NCBI GenBank assembly: GCA_965644315.1
Contig: CBFFRQ010000040.1
Location: forward strand, 62,001-126,000
Source of the DNA: Caecitellus pseudoparvulus
Lineage: Eukaryota; Protista; Bigyra: Bicosoecida
Length of the DNA stretch: 64,000 nt
Direction: 5' to 3'
The notes beneath the pieces are model-generated. The model saw nothing but the letters and a program-made list of their open reading frames with translations. It was not told the DNA's origin and did no database searches. Below are positions 36,404 to 42,030 of the stretch, in pieces. The position numbers were made by a program, and so were the translations under genes. Position 1 is the stretch's first letter. Every line of letters begins with the position of its first letter.

Positions 36404-39400
36404 ATGAATCGCCTTGTATGCCCCATGCCTCACGCTCCACGCTTGGAGCCAGTCTTTTCAGCCCGCAAACCCGACCTGCAACTTTCCCCAACCTCGGCGC
36501 GGCGCCGAAGATCCATTGAGAACCTGCGGCCCGCTCTGCAGGCTTGGTGCACTTTGACGCGATTCACCTGGGTAAAGCATCATAAATCTTTCCCTTGGAC
36601 GTACAGGTCTTGTTGGTGCGACCGTAGCTCGGACATGATGCAGGGCAGTTCTCGAGTGATGGAAGTACTGCCTGCACGGCACTTGCACCACACACACTGC
36701 GAGGCTCTGTCCTCCTGCCCTTCCGAGCAAGTTTTAGAGACTTCCCAGGGTCAGAGGGGTACTGTGGAGTCCAAGGGCACCCAAGAACGCACTTTGCTTC
36801 GTTCACCCACGATGGAGCAGCGGAGCCAGATCGGGGCTCAGCCAAGGAGGCATGTGCGACGAACGCAGGCGGCGTACTGGTCCAATTGGAGCAGCAGACG
36901 GTGGTGGTCAGGGTGGATGGAGTGGCTGTGGCTTGTGTACATGTCGTCCATCCTGCGAGGGGTAGTGGGTGGCGTTCCTGGATGCTGTGATGTGGAGAAT
37001 GACGTGCTGATGGACTGTAATTCGTGCACAGGAACCAGCTTGACTATATCATACAGTACCATTTCTGGGATCAACGCGAGTGCATTTGACAGCCTCACCA
37101 GCCTCACAGACCTTGTCTTGTACGGCAACGACCTGACCAGCCTGCCTGTGGGAGTGTTTGACAGCCTCACCAACCTCACACACCTTGACCTGAACAACAA
37201 CGACCTGACAAGCCTGCCTCTGGGCGTGTTTGACAGCCTCACCAGCCTCAAAGAACTGGACATGAGATTCAACGACCTGACCAGCCTGCCTGTGGGAGTG
37301 TTTGACAGCCTCACCAGCCTCACAGACCTGTACTTGAGCCACAACGACCTGACAAGCCTGCCTGTGGGAGTGTTTGACAACCTCACCAACCTCACAGACC
37401 TGCACCTGAGCCGCAATGACCTGACGAGCCTGCCTCCGGGCGTGTTTGACAGCCTCACCAGCCTCACAGACCTGCATCTTGGCAGCAATGACCTGACAAG
37501 CCTGCCTCTGGGAGTGTTTGACAGCCTCACCAGCCTCACAGACCTGCACCTGAGATACAACGACCTGACCAGCCTGCCTCTGGGGGTGTTTGACAACCTC
37601 ACCAGCCTCACAATCCTGGGCCTGAGCTACAACGAGCTGACGAGCCTGCCTGAGGGTGTGTTTGACAATCTCACCAGCCTCACAGACCTGCACCTGAGCC
37701 ACAACGACCTGACGAGCCTGCCTGTGGGAGTGTTTGACAACCTCACCAACCTCACAGACCTGCACCTGAGCCACAACGACCTGACCAGCCTGCCTCTGGG
37801 GGTGTTTGACAATCTCACCAGCCTCACAGACCTGCATCTTGGCAGCAATGACCTGACAAGCCTGCCTGAGGGAGTGTTTGACAGCCTCACCAGCCTCACA
37901 CACCTTGACCTGAGCCACAACGACCTGACAAGCCTGCCTCCGGGAATGTTTGACAGCCTCCCCGACCTCACACGCCTGTACTTGAGCCACAATGACGTGA
38001 CGAGCCTGCCTGTGGGTGTGTTCGACAGCCTCACCAGTCTCACTGACCTGTCCCTGACCAACAACGATGCCCTGACCAGCCTGCCAGTGGGTGTGTTTGA
38101 CAGCCTCACTTGGCTCACATATCTTGACCTCACCAACAACGATGCCCTGACCAGCCTGCCTGTGGGTGTGTTTGACAACCTCACCAGCCTCGCATACCTG
38201 TCCCTCACCAACAACGATGCCCTGACCAGCCTGCCTGTGGGTGTGTTTGACAGCCTCACCAGTCTCACTGACCTGGACCTGAGGAGCAACGACCTGACCA
38301 GCCTGCCTGTGGGTGTGTTTGACAGCCTCACCAGCCTCACAGAACTGGACATGAGATACAACGACCTGACCAGCCTGCCTGAGGGAGTGTTTGACAGCCT
38401 CACCAGCCTCACATACCTGGACCTGAGCGTCAATGACCTGGCCAGCCTGCCTATTGGTGTGTTTGACAGCCTCACCAGCCTCACAGACCTGCATCTTGGC
38501 AGCAATGACCTGACGAGCCTGCCTGCGGGCGTGTTTGACAGCCTCACCAGCCTGACATACCTGTCCCTGAGCAACAACGACCTGACCAGCCTGCCTGTGG
38601 GCGTGTTTGACAACCTCACCAGCCTCACAGACCTGTTTCTTGGCAGCAATGACCTGACGAGCCTGCCTGACGGCGTGTTTGACAGCCTCACAAGCCTGAC
38701 ACTCCTGCACCTGAGCAACAACGATGCCCTGACCAGCCTGCCTGTGGGCGTGTTTGACAGCCTCAGCAGCATTGCATCTTTGTATGTCTATGGGTCACCC
38801 TTTTCCAGTTCATGTCCACCCTCATCTCCAGTAGCCATCAACTGCTCCATGCAACACGTCCCCGTGACCTCACACCGTCTGTGCATGTGCAGTGGCTGCC
38901 CCACAGCACCACCAATTACCAACACAACACTCAACTGCCATGAATCGTACAGCTGCTCGACCGCCTCAGGCGACGACTCGTTCATCTTGCATGACGGTGC
39001 ATCTGTGGACTGCTCAGGGAACGCCTCGTGCACGAGTACCATCATGTTCTGCACTCACAGTTCAACACCTACTTCATGTAGCATTTCATGCACTGGCGAA
39101 GGCTCCTGTATAGGCAGCACATTGTATGGTGCCTGGAACTGCCTAAGTGGTTCTTGTCCGACCGTTGTGGATGTTGGATGTGTGCCAAGGCAACGTGAGC
39201 CATTGTCCACTCCTTCGGCAACGCCAAGTCCCACACAGTCCCCATTGCCATCTTCCACACCCAGCGCAACTCTCCAGCAAGCTCAAGCTAGTCCCACTTC
39301 AAATTCGCCATCGGGCACTTCAAGCAGCTCTGGAGCTCCCACTTCATCTCCGTCTGTGACTCCATCTTTGACGCCTACAGTGTCACGTACCGCGGCGTTA

Positions 39401-41830
39401 AGTCCTTCCACTGCCCCAACGGTATTCATCACAGCCATCCCTCGCACCTCCACATCACCCTCCCCTTTCCTTCCCCGCTCGGCTTGGGCGCTCACCCACC
39501 CCTCCATCAACCCCTCACCAGCTCCCTACACCGTCCCCCGCTTCTCATCACAGCTCGCATGTGCTGATCACTGCTCCTCCCCACAAGCCATCATCCTCCC
39601 CTGCCCTCGACCAGGCTCATGCCTCCCCCACTCCGACGTGCGCCTCCTCACAGGCTGCCAGCCTGGACACCGCGGCCTCGCATGCCAAGCCTGTGACGAC
39701 GGCTGGGCTGCTACCTCCCCCTGCACCACCTGCCGCCAGTGTCCCTACAATGGCGTGGCGCCAGGTATCGTCAAGGCTGGCACGACAGCCACACAGATGG
39801 CGCTGGGACTGGCCATGTCCCTCTTCGCAGTGCACGGCTATGCACGTGCTCCAGACCGTGTCGCGACGAGCCTGTTCAGTGGCGGCCTGCGCCTGGCCAT
39901 GTGGTACATCGGCATGGCGGGGCAGGTGGCGTTGTTGGCTGCCGACACGCCAGGCACACTGCAGGCGACAGCCCACACCCTGGGCCACTGGGCCGACGTC
40001 TGTGGCATGGCCCAGCCGTGGCGAGATGGCCAAGGCCAGACTATGCTGCCCAACGGCACCATGTACGCCAGCCAGCCTGAGCCAGCCCAAGGCGTCGATG
40101 TCCTGGGCATCCTGGGCGCACTCACAGGGCGAGCTGGCGTCGCGACAATGCCAGGTGCAGGGTGCCTCGTGGGCGGAGGCGACAGCCGCAGCCCGCATGA
40201 CACCACCAACATCATCATGGCCGTGTACGGCGCCGTGCTGCTGTGTGTCAGTGCCGCTGTGCTCTGGTGCGCTCGCCCTGCACCTGGCAAGACCTGGACC
40301 ACCATCCTGCTGCTCCTGGCGCCAGCGGCGTACATGCAGGTGGTGCCCAGTATCATCCAGGGCCAGGCCCGTGTCGTGGGTCTGCAGCCAGTGTGGCGTG
40401 GCATGTCCAGTCCGGACGATGTCGCTGGGCATGCGGCTGACGTGGGCGGGTACGCTGCCTCCCTGACGTTGCAGTGCTTGGCTGCCACAGTGGGTGTGCT
40501 GAGTGTGCTGGCGTGGCGGCAGTGGCGAAGGTCGGAACACCTGCTGCCACGGGGAGCGTCCATTCATGTGTTCTGCAGCAAAGGATACCGCACACAGTAC
40601 ACGCCACAGCAAGCAGTCCGCCTCGCACACGATACAGGCGCAGACAAGGAACTCCAAGCAGCAGCTGTCGCGGCTGCACGTGCCAGTGAGCGTGCCTGCT
40701 GGGGTGCCGGGCGCCTCCTGCCCACACACGCCTTCCCTGCCCTGCAGATGGCCCTCGTCGTCCTCGTGGCGGTCATGGGCAGCATGACGACATCCATCGT
40801 CGCTCGCCTCGTGTGTGTGGGTGTGGGCGTGGCGGGCAGCATGGCCCTTGTGCAGCACCGTCGGCCGTGGGCGCTGGCTGAGCTGACCGACCTGGATGTG
40901 CTGGCCCATGGGGGCATCCTGGTGCAGGTGGTGTGTGTGGGTGTGGGCACGGCGGGTGGCGGACTGGCCACTGCTGCATCCATCATCTCCGGCATCGGGC
41001 ACGTGCTTGTGCTGCTGTGGCTGGCGATGGCTGTCGCTCGAGGGTACAGCGGCCGAGTGCGAGCACTGCTGGCACGTGTGGCTCGGCGCCTGCGAGCGCT
41101 GCTGCCTGAGCTGGGGCCAGCCAGTGCAGGAAGCGGCAGCAGTGGCCAGCTGGGCGATGTGACTGACAGCCAAGTGCCGGGTGTGGGCAGCATTGTGTGG
41201 GTGTTGGCGCAGCGGTGTGTGCGGCGAGGCAAGGTGCGGCCGGCAGCGTCTCGCCCAGCGTCAGATGTGTTGAGTGTGCTGGGCATGGTGCAAGAGCAAG
41301 GACTGACCGTGGAGACTGGCATGGCGGATGTGGTGGGGGGCTCGGGATCAGCTATGGTGGCCATGCCGGCTGGCAGTGCAGCCCAGTTCCCGTCAAACAG
41401 TAGCGCCAGCAAGGGCGGCAAGCACCTCTTGCACTCACTTGACACAGCCACTACTGCCACTGCCCACGGTGTGCATGGCACAAACCCTCTCTTCCGACAC
41501 AGCGGCTCCTCCACACCCTTGCGTGCAGCAAGGCATGCCCCGCAGCCAGCTGCCTCCACAGGCCCACTCCGCTCCAACCGCTCTGCGAGTGTAGGCGCGT
41601 TCCCAGCCCTGCCATCTTCCCGCACCCAGGGCTCGCGAGGTCAAGTTGACCCGTCTACTCTGCTCGAGCACGTGGTGGTGTCTCGTCCAGAACGACACAT
41701 GTCCATTGACCGGAGCTTTGACGACAAGGGACGTGTATCCTTCTCAGCTGCTCGCCTTCAACGCAACTCTATGCGCAGCAGTATCTATGAATCCCAGAGG
41801 TCGAGAAGCAAGAGCATGGCTGTGAAGTAG
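36404..41830 (+). CDS. Intronless LRR receptor: signal-like segment, Cys cap, 24 VLR-like LRR modules, Cys-rich domains, S/T/P stalk, ~9 TM helices, cytoplasmic tail (true start likely 36812 or 36917)
   Basis: 1808-codon ORF. Repeats LTSLPxGVFDxLTxLTxLxLxxND, CQPGHRGLACQACDDGW motif, hydrophobic segments at 39790-41040. Confidence 0.88.
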   Translation: MNRLVCPMPHAPRLEPVFSARKPDLQLSPTSARRRRSIENLRPALQAWCTLTRFTWVKHHKSFPWTYRSCWCDRSSDMMQGSSRVMEVLPARHLHHTHCEALSSCPSEQVLETSQGQRGTVESKGTQERTLLRSPTMEQRSQIGAQPRRHVRRTQAAYWSNWSSRRWWSGWMEWLWLVYMSSILRGVVGGVPGCCDVENDVLMDCNSCTGTSLTISYSTISGINASAFDSLTSLTDLVLYGNDLTSLPVGVFDSLTNLTHLDLNNNDLTSLPLGVFDSLTSLKELDMRFNDLTSLPVGVFDSLTSLTDLYLSHNDLTSLPVGVFDNLTNLTDLHLSRNDLTSLPPGVFDSLTSLTDLHLGSNDLTSLPLGVFDSLTSLTDLHLRYNDLTSLPLGVFDNLTSLTILGLSYNELTSLPEGVFDNLTSLTDLHLSHNDLTSLPVGVFDNLTNLTDLHLSHNDLTSLPLGVFDNLTSLTDLHLGSNDLTSLPEGVFDSLTSLTHLDLSHNDLTSLPPGMFDSLPDLTRLYLSHNDVTSLPVGVFDSLTSLTDLSLTNNDALTSLPVGVFDSLTWLTYLDLTNNDALTSLPVGVFDNLTSLAYLSLTNNDALTSLPVGVFDSLTSLTDLDLRSNDLTSLPVGVFDSLTSLTELDMRYNDLTSLPEGVFDSLTSLTYLDLSVNDLASLPIGVFDSLTSLTDLHLGSNDLTSLPAGVFDSLTSLTYLSLSNNDLTSLPVGVFDNLTSLTDLFLGSNDLTSLPDGVFDSLTSLTLLHLSNNDALTSLPVGVFDSLSSIASLYVYGSPFSSSCPPSSPVAINCSMQHVPVTSHRLCMCSGCPTAPPITNTTLNCHESYSCSTASGDDSFILHDGASVDCSGNASCTSTIMFCTHSSTPTSCSISCTGEGSCIGSTLYGAWNCLSGSCPTVVDVGCVPRQREPLSTPSATPSPTQSPLPSSTPSATLQQAQASPTSNSPSGTSSSSGAPTSSPSVTPSLTPTVSRTAALSPSTAPTVFITAIPRTSTSPSPFLPRSAWALTHPSINPSPAPYTVPRFSSQLACADHCSSPQAIILPCPRPGSCLPHSDVRLLTGCQPGHRGLACQACDDGWAATSPCTTCRQCPYNGVAPGIVKAGTTATQMALGLAMSLFAVHGYARAPDRVATSLFSGGLRLAMWYIGMAGQVALLAADTPGTLQATAHTLGHWADVCGMAQPWRDGQGQTMLPNGTMYASQPEPAQGVDVLGILGALTGRAGVATMPGAGCLVGGGDSRSPHDTTNIIMAVYGAVLLCVSAAVLWCARPAPGKTWTTILLLLAPAAYMQVVPSIIQGQARVVGLQPVWRGMSSPDDVAGHAADVGGYAASLTLQCLAATVGVLSVLAWRQWRRSEHLLPRGASIHVFCSKGYRTQYTPQQAVRLAHDTGADKELQAAAVAAARASERACWGAGRLLPTHAFPALQMALVVLVAVMGSMTTSIVARLVCVGVGVAGSMALVQHRRPWALAELTDLDVLAHGGILVQVVCVGVGTAGGGLATAASIISGIGHVLVLLWLAMAVARGYSGRVRALLARVARRLRALLPELGPASAGSGSSGQLGDVTDSQVPGVGSIVWVLAQRCVRRGKVRPAASRPASDVLSVLGMVQEQGLTVETGMADVVGGSGSAMVAMPAGSAAQFPSNSSASKGGKHLLHSLDTATTATAHGVHGTNPLFRHSGSSTPLRAARHAPQPAASTGPLRSNRSASVGAFPALPSSRTQGSRGQVDPSTLLEHVVVSRPERHMSIDRSFDDKGRVSFSAARLQRNSMRSSIYESQRSRSKSMAVK
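36718..36731 (+). repeat. 14-bp direct repeat, copy 1 (CCCTTCCGAGCAAG)
   Basis: Identical to 42031-42044. Confidence 0.85.
37061..38800 (+). repeat. Coding tandem array: 23 full LRR units (19 x 72 bp, 4 x 75 bp) plus one terminal unit
   Basis: Units counted directly. Core CTGAC(C/A/G)AGCCTGCCTnnnGG(A/C/T/G)GTGTTTGACA(G/A)CCTCACCA(G/A)CCTC repeats. Unit lengths sum exactly to 37061-38728. Confidence 0.95.
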
Positions 41831-42030
41831 GGTCAGCCTGATCTGAGTTTGGCCGATGTGACCCCCGGCTTGTCGCTGAGTTCGACGCGCACTTCACTTC
41901 AGCAGCGCACCTACGACCCACTTGCAAAGGCACACTATCAGCAAGGTCAAATATTCAGCCAAGCGAGGGCCTGCTACATTCCTCAGTGGCCTGATTGAGC
42001 CTCCATGCGGCGAGGCAGCTTGTGGCACAC

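Follow-up and report, generated by a model that had tools for sequence, protein, structure and literature searches.

A leucine-rich repeat (LRR) gene was analysed in a window of 64,000 nucleotides from the bicosoecid Caecitellus pseudoparvulus (assembly GCA_965644315.1, contig CBFFRQ010000040.1, positions 62,001 to 126,000); coordinates below refer to this window unless another contig is named. The array of LRR units in this gene probably serves as the ligand-binding head of a protist surface protein, whose gene is complete, encoded in the germline and part of a lineage-restricted family. The original prediction, which was made from the sequence alone, had recognised in this array the design of the variable lymphocyte receptors (VLRs) of jawless vertebrates. 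The resemblance lies only in the general LRR class carried on a stalk, and the gene is not a somatically assembled system. Our best guess, predicted from the sequence, is that the protein is a receptor or adhesin of the cell surface that binds a ligand or prey. The most interesting features are found at the level of the family, and these are the interchangeable heads and a nine-helix membrane module that was most likely homogenised by gene conversion.

The gene occupies one open frame of 1808 codons plus a stop, for which no intron is needed. The domains are arranged as follows.

36404..41830, + strand: whole open reading frame (ORF), uninterrupted through all domains
36917..36982, + strand: predicted signal-peptide-like hydrophobic segment (MEWLWLVYMSSILRGVVGGVPG); an equivalent is present before the CC motif of every full-length paralogue
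36983..37060, + strand: N-terminal Cys cap, CC-x9-C-x2-C, family-specific and conserved in paralogues
37061..38794, + strand: 23 LRR units, then a degenerate capping repeat (repeat finder, Pfam, unit alignment)
38795..39190, + strand: C-terminal cap and Cys-rich domain, about 130 residues with about 22 Cys, no known family
39191..39550, + strand: Ser/Thr/Pro-rich mucin-like stalk, differing in length among paralogues
39551..39760, + strand: juxtamembrane Cys knot, all 8 Cys invariant, with weak likeness to DUF7630 or Ephrin_rec_like
39761..41101, + strand: predicted nine-helix membrane module (hydropathy and AlphaFold2 model), no Pfam family
41102..41827, + strand: predicted cytoplasmic tail, about 240 residues, Ser/Arg-rich at its end (hydropathy, paralogue comparison)

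The repeat array and its scaffold codons

The array was found by Tandem Repeats Finder at 37085-38770 with a 72-nt period (23.2 copies, 84% matches, 0% indels), and in register it consists of 23 units of 24 residues, four of which carry a 25th residue, Ala. The unit consensus is LTSLPxGVFD(S/N)LT(S/N)LTxLxLxxND, and a degenerate final repeat leads into the Cys-rich cap. The ORF matched Pfam LRR_8 in 15 stretches with an E-value of 5e-153 and 497 bits, as compared with the cut-off of 27 bits, which places the units in the typical 24-residue LRR class; LRR_4, LRR_5 and LRR_14 also matched.

The entropy of each position was computed on the 22 full units, and the shares of pairwise differences were calculated on all 23, the atypical first unit included. 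At the scaffold positions L1, S3, L4, P5, G7, V8, F9, D10, L12, L15, L18 and N23 the entropy was 0-0.5 bits, whereas positions 6, 17, 19, 21 and 22 reached 2.0-2.5 bits, with 5-7 different residues at each. Variation is not spread evenly over the unit but is concentrated at these last five positions, which hold 64% of the pairwise residue differences (78% fall at seven of the 24 positions). The residues that the original prediction listed for the variable sites of xLxLxx were essentially right, and the equally variable position 6 (LP-x-G) had been missed. The x positions of the LxxLxLxx motif lie on the concave sheet of LRR solenoids. By analogy with this motif and with established structures, positions 17, 19, 21 and 22 can be assigned to the putative concave face of the array. 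Most of the residues found there are D, S, H, Y, N, G or R, and the four-residue sets are distinct in 20 of the 23 units; at the DNA level all 23 units differ from each other. Positions 11 and 14 toggle between Ser and Asn, making or removing N-x-T sequons in 7 and 3 units, respectively.

Near-invariance of the scaffold had been claimed down to the synonymous sites, and the codon counts bear this out together with the entropies. Ser3 is encoded by AGC and Leu12 by CTC in 22 of 22 units (20% and 27% in the rest of the gene), Phe9 by TTT and Pro5 by CCT in 21 of 22 (13% and 18% elsewhere), and another Leu position has CTC in 20 of 22, with synonymous variation present at T2, G7 and N23. Since the codons fixed in the scaffold are rare elsewhere in the gene, the synonymous conservation cannot be ascribed to codon bias. 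The near-identical scaffold is instead attributed to concerted evolution of the array, in the form of unequal exchange or conversion among the units.

A gene family on a shared membrane module

In order to find relatives, the LRR head was used in a six-frame search of the 30.6 Mb assembly. It gave 64 matches that belong to at least 15 close loci at 56-76% identity, and twenty loci were retrieved, so the paralogues that the original prediction had proposed to look for are many. Four of the close loci are on the window's own contig and three stand in tandem on a 48-kb contig. About 16 genes are LRR-headed and about 35 carry the membrane module. The full-length members share the whole architecture, the number of units ranging from 8 to about 55, and most of them use 25-residue units; the arrays of loci L038 and L039 contain higher-order block duplications. 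Family-wide, the entropy is highest at positions 17, 19, 21 and 22, followed by 24, 6 and 11.

Family members are often located on small contigs (3.7-48 kb: C210, C191, C112, C155, C134, C114), some of them cut by the contig ends, which indicates that the family sits in poorly assembling regions. Locus L042, consisting of a leader, an N-cap and 10 LRR units before it breaks off, and L038, which follows on this strand some 25 kb farther downstream, appear to be one split member: L038 begins inside an array with the unit types of L042 and runs through the cap, the stalk and the module. The two lie at G000:C40:139000-176000, 13-50 kb past the end of the window. L036 (G000:C18:149000-157000) is decayed; its frame stops after the cap domain, and module fragments with TGA stops follow.

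The caps are particular to the family. No LRRNT or LRRCT domain was present among the Pfam hits of the whole protein, and none was found on the cap pieces even at E<=5; both caps have their own Cys patterns. The N-cap is 43-71% identical to those of the paralogues, at synonymous distances (dS) of about 0.85 or more. The C-terminal cap domain has no Pfam match, and its nearest language-model clusters in the ESM Atlas are unnamed. Since it has 17 matches in the genome, the domain marks the LRR-headed subfamily. The juxtamembrane Cys knot matched DUF7630 weakly (17.4 bits, E 0.005, below the 27-bit cut-off), while the relatives P0016 and P0030 scored 23.3 and 27.3 bits; the Cys columns are invariant both in an alignment of 11 in-genome paralogues (A1) and in one with distant relatives (A2). 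As to the stalk, in L035 (G000:C67:17000-25500) an 18-residue Thr/Ser-rich unit is repeated in tandem about ten times, almost perfectly, and repeated stalk blocks were also observed in L039 and L043. Stalk length thus appears to be another fast-changing part of these genes.

The structure of the Cys knot and the module was predicted by AlphaFold2. With the 11 mostly near-identical paralogues alone the model was unusable, its predicted local distance difference test score (pLDDT) being 39, whereas with alignment A2 a pLDDT of 78 and a predicted template modelling score (pTM) of 0.80 were obtained. In the latter model the Cys knot is a small beta structure, followed by nine long helices; helices 2 and 3 are connected by a loop of about 90 residues, and some 65 residues form a helical insert that separates helices 5 and 6. 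The loop contains a conserved Cys pair and an N-x-T sequon that is invariant in A1, and it is predicted to be extracellular and glycosylated. Since the head is outside and the helices are nine in number, the topology would be N-out and C-in, with the helix 5-6 insert in the cytosol. Charged residues are conserved at helices 7-9 and an Arg within helix 2 is invariant; those kept down to 20% identity in A2 include Arg114 inside helix 2, R419, E444, D449 and R497.

Relatives of this module are rare in the databases. No Pfam family matches it, and word-index protein searches, both with the module as a region of the whole protein and with the module alone, found none, the candidate lists probably being swamped by low-complexity words. 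An exhaustive profile search over 1.84 billion representative proteins retrieved only 38 relatives, four of them below 1e-30. The ten that were inspected are all unnamed proteins, and the two best that could be traced come from one metagenome assembly. A shape search of the ESM Atlas, in which predicted models stand on both sides, gave template modelling (TM) scores of 0.60 and 0.59 over 392 and 399 residues with two clusters of DUF7630 proteins, one of which is 78% LRR_8-bearing with recorded taxa mostly from Cnidaria; the language-model neighbours in the same atlas are labelled DUF7630, Ephrin_rec_like or TRP. Assignment of the module to a solved fold was rejected, as VIA-align returned only generic helical matches (Z<=8.6). 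A TRP/Flc identity was likewise discarded, because PF06011 matches 26 other places of the genome and none of the module loci. The TRP-type domains matched by PF06011 sit in many giant frames of 2,000-6,500 codons, which are unrelated to the nine-helix module. In the literature no paper was found on DUF7630 or on this LRR surface-protein family. With no Pfam family for the module either, the word "undescribed", which the original prediction had used, is fair for the protein family.

The module has 73 matches in the genome, about 35 of them full-length. Subfamily A comprises 13 modules at 89-93% identity and subfamily B about 12 at 42-46%, the others being at 29-41%. Subfamily B includes the LRR genes L035 and L043; some subfamily-A modules (C89, C67) are in frames with no LRR match nearby, and the LRR-headed L032 has a single-pass anchor in place of the module. 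Comparison of the different parts of the gene with the subfamily-A paralogues revealed very different ages. The N-cap, the C-cap and the tail have dS values of about 0.6-3 or are saturated (the tail, 53-67% identical, has dS of about 0.6-1.1 and omega, the ratio of nonsynonymous to synonymous distance, of 0.3-0.6), while the 526-codon module has dS of 0.18-0.25 and omega of 0.2-0.28. The tract of low dS covers about 1.6 kb in the middle of the gene (39551-41128 and its paralogues in A1) and is shared across different contigs. The dS of the module is about 0.2 and that of the caps and the tail about 1 or more. These are thus old genes whose module was homogenised between loci of different contigs, most likely by gene conversion. 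The paralogues L034 and L037 form a recent pair, and between them it is the module that differs most (dS 0.09 as compared with 0.02 in the LRR region), which fits conversion from different donors.

The module also carries heads of other kinds, the heads of relatives having been read only from metagenomic proteins. P0003 (L051) has a C-type-lectin-like head on the same module, and L043 and L052 have a PAN/apple-like insert, both motifs having been read by eye with no Pfam hit. L052 lies on a metagenomic contig and is an LRR gene of subfamily B; it shares the cap and the stalk, in addition to having the PAN/apple-like insert. The distant relatives P0010, P0013 and P0030 contain FG-GAP repeats or Ephrin_rec_like domains, and those with Ephrin_rec_like also contain DUF7630. 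Judged from these sequences, the Cys knot and the nine-helix module are a putative modular receptor chassis that extends beyond the Caecitellus genome, into proteins from uncultured organisms.

Comparison with VLRs and other LRR proteins

Among solved structures the best matches of the array were LRRTM (2e-78), SHOC2, designed consensus LRRs, ALS (3e-62) and LRRC15 (2e-61). VLR-A (3e-47), TLR3 (4e-45), VLR-B (4e-43), LGR4/5 (about 1e-43), repebodies, Toll and plant receptor kinases ranked lower among the 316 hits. Since the VLRs are one match among hundreds, the GVFD-type unit represents the general typical LRR class and is not a VLR signature. Every LRR protein is defined by a scaffold that is fixed and a concave face that varies, so that this contrast is not specific to VLRs.

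The likeness to VLRs consists in the typical 24-residue LRR with the LxxLxLxxN-L-x-SLP-x-GVFD-x-L motif, the concave diversity, the Cys caps and the Thr/Pro-rich stalk. Of the VLR design that had been claimed, the extracellular LRR, the Cys-rich caps and the Ser/Thr/Pro stalk stand, whereas the LRRNT and LRRCT domains and the glycosylphosphatidylinositol (GPI)-type end do not: VLRs have 4-9 units between LRRNT and LRRCT caps and a GPI anchor, and the LRR gene has 23 units, family-specific caps and a nine-helix anchor, its stalk being followed by the Cys knot, the helices and the tail. The genetic organisation differs as well. VLRs combine an incomplete germline gene with flanking cassettes and AID/APOBEC-type deaminases, whereas here the germline gene is complete and none of these elements was found. 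The orphan LRR cassettes suggested by the original prediction did not turn up in the 37 kb upstream or the 25 kb downstream, the sole LRR match in the window being the gene itself. A search of the 30.6 Mb assembly, which is possibly incomplete, with PF08210 (APOBEC_N) gave nothing at E<=0.1, other deaminase families not having been searched. Resemblance to VLRs at the level of the repeat does not imply a VLR-like diversification system.

LRRTM, LRRC15, ALS, Toll/TLR3 and Slit-like proteins have the same repeat length and motif, extracellular heads and Cys caps. The gene described here differs from these animal receptors, which have a single-pass anchor, TIR or PDZ-type tails, LRRNT/LRRCT caps and repeats that are not homogenised at the DNA level. 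With LGR4-6 and the glycoprotein hormone receptors it shares the logic of an LRR horseshoe joined through a Cys-rich hinge to a polytopic membrane domain; unlike them, it has nine helices, a large extracellular loop and a cytosolic insert, and no 7tm Pfam hit. A rhodopsin-type seven-helix domain was therefore considered and rejected, since apart from the missing 7tm match the best Foldseek TM score was about 0.16 and VIA-align reached Z of about 7 on partial helices only. Polycystin-1 (PKD1) has LRRs with caps, a C-type lectin and other adhesion domains in a long glycosylated ectodomain, and a membrane part of 11 helices. It resembles the present family in placing capped extracellular LRR and adhesion heads on a polytopic membrane part. 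However, no PKD, REJ, GPS, PLAT or PKD_channel domain was detected by Pfam, and the number and layout of the helices differ. The LRR_8/DUF7630 proteins of the ESM Atlas (mostly Cnidaria and Porifera) are alike in the predicted shape of the Cys knot and the module (TM 0.59-0.60), but they have no sequence link to the module above the thresholds; haptophyte, chlorophyte and ciliate clusters with Ephrin_rec_like belong to the same uncharacterised group.

Possible selection on the putative binding face and alternative interpretations

Nonsynonymous (dN) and synonymous distances were obtained as Nei-Gojobori counts over all pairs of units, and concave codons were compared with scaffold codons. In this array the scaffold dN was 0.025 and its dS 0.30-0.34 (dN/dS 0.08), and the concave dN was 0.61-0.65, that is, 1.9 times the scaffold dS (1.4-2.7 by bootstrap over the 23 units). 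The same ratio was 1.6-2.9 in the homogenised arrays (six, including L031, L035, L036, L038 and L039; scaffold dS 0.23-0.47) and 0.4-1.1 in the old drifted arrays (scaffold dS 0.8-1.4), while the concave dN was 0.5-1.2 in all arrays regardless of their age. These values suggest that concerted evolution erases the differences of the scaffold while selection may keep or renew those of the binding face between units. The pattern is no proof of an arms race, and the fixed scaffold with its variable face mostly reflects concerted evolution acting on an ordinary LRR. The per-codon comparison that had been proposed thus gave a concave dN about twice the scaffold dS, but as an argument for selection it is confounded by the concerted evolution of the array.

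The assembly was compared with sequencing reads in the form of short Logan contigs mapped to 36700-41900. About 65% of the words sampled from the window occur in two samples of one organism, as compared with 5-16% in marine metagenomes and in other organisms, and no RNA run was found. Every bin of the array was covered in both samples. The depth was about 30-40 on the unique flanks and summed to about 1000 over the module, as would be expected of a multi-copy segment. The reads do not contradict the assembly of the array, but neither do they confirm its full length independently. Two contigs that look like haplotypes differ at 36761-36885, and in the stalk (39216-39304) 81 other letters replace 87 in both samples, an allele or strain difference from the assembly. 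In one sample a joint appears at 38428>38734; it stems from the path of a single contig through the repeats and was not counted as an allele. In organism B and a marine metagenome, pieces of the array and the module were present at >=95% identity with little or nothing of the caps and the stalk of this gene, a pattern that would agree with family members being turned over between relatives but is weak evidence for it.

Taken as a germline-encoded surface protein, the gene product would work as follows. The head would use a single long, composite concave surface to bind an extracellular ligand, candidate ligands being the surfaces of prey or of other cells, or the substrate. Concave positions 17, 19, 21 and 22 and loop position 6 stay different in each unit. 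The family would supply a germline repertoire of differing heads, and the nine-helix module, for which a channel is another candidate role, may serve as their common transducer or anchor; it is kept about 90% identical while heads, caps and tails, old as they are, diverge between paralogues.

Several points weigh against this reading. The true start of the gene is uncertain, candidate Met codons being at 36917, at 36812 and farther upstream. Foldseek found no solved relative of the module in the PDB at E<=0.001 (best TM about 0.16), and no read-derived contig spans the array in either sample. On the side of selection, the sites with dN above dS were picked after their variability had been seen, conversion wipes out synonymous differences of the scaffold and thereby lowers its dS, and the pairwise dN/dS counts ignore the tree. 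In the L034/L037 pair the colinear LRR region has an omega of 0.73, a value from only 11 nonsynonymous and 5 synonymous changes; the omega of the membrane module in the same pair is 0.21. Since the leader 5' of the hydrophobic segment has an omega of about 2.2 in this pair, it may be untranslated.

A more far-reaching interpretation is that the about 16 LRR-headed and about 20 other-headed genes form a germline, fast-diversifying recognition repertoire that a unicellular grazer would direct at prey, virus or self/non-self, in which selection would keep the concave faces different and conversion would keep the transducer uniform. This is possible, though we regard it as rather doubtful. If true, the family would be a protist counterpart of the expanded families of innate receptors, and the membrane module at its base is one that has no described relative. 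Of the diversifying recognition receptor that the original prediction had in mind, the part that stands is that binding-face differences are kept; the variation, however, is between the units of one gene and not between cells, alleles or strains.

The array might also belong to a passive coat protein or adhesin, its solenoid being a structural spacer or a generic sticky surface on which the x positions are simply unconstrained, with neither ligand-specific recognition nor signalling. Variable x positions are generic to LRRs, the concave dN saturates at 0.5-1.2 whatever the age of the array, the concave alphabet is limited, a mucin-like stalk is typical of coat proteins, and omega is below 1 in the LRR region of the recent pair. 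Nevertheless, neutrality alone does not give a concave dN above the scaffold dS in six of six homogenised arrays; a nine-helix module whose charged residues are invariant and whose cytosolic insert and tail are conserved exceeds what an anchor needs, and the same module carries other recognised binding domains. We consider a purely passive role unlikely.

Programmed diversification in the manner of a VLR or antigenic-variation system, in which frequent mitotic gene conversion or shuffling of units among arrays and paralogues would make new heads in clonal populations, is very unlikely. It could draw on the conversion active in the family (module dS 0.2 against about 1 or more in caps and tail), on the range of unit numbers (8-55) and the block duplications in L038 and L039, on the many members placed on small contigs (the six named above), and on the related marine samples with family pieces at >=95% identity but not the unique parts of this gene. 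However, the gene is complete with no interrupting spacer, no orphan cassettes stand nearby and no APOBEC_N deaminase was found. Since the heads, caps and tails of the paralogues are old (dS about 1 or more), the heads are not rapidly exchanged, and the unique flanks are the same in both samples of the organism, one stalk indel being the sole change.

An array collapsed or expanded in assembly, or a pseudogene, is hardly credible in spite of the missing spanning contig and the broken members of the family (L036 and the split L042/L038), as the frame is open for 5.4 kb through all domains, the scaffold dN/dS of 0.08 indicates purifying selection, the 23 of 23 units distinct in DNA make the array assemblable, and every array bin is covered in two samples.

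Almost nothing is known in molecular terms about surface recognition in marine protists that live freely, including the way in which a grazer distinguishes prey, viruses and kin. The locus shows a modular design, with exchangeable LRR, lectin-like, PAN-like and FG-GAP heads on one rare nine-helix module. Should the heads bind specific ligands, they would offer a tractable entry to protist recognition, and a function could be assigned to a so far uncharacterised membrane fold, which is predicted in cnidarian and sponge data as well.

The base composition of the region is distinct from its surroundings. The GC content is 58-59% across 36-40 kb as compared with 62-72% in the other 2-kb segments of the window, and the GC content at third codon positions is 0.67-0.77 in the LRR gene and 0.81 in a neighbouring ORF, the codon usage of the LRR gene being less biased. 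The opposite-strand ORFs at 37049-38710, 37627-38772 and 36838-37611 were dismissed as by-products of the stop-free repeat and are not genes.

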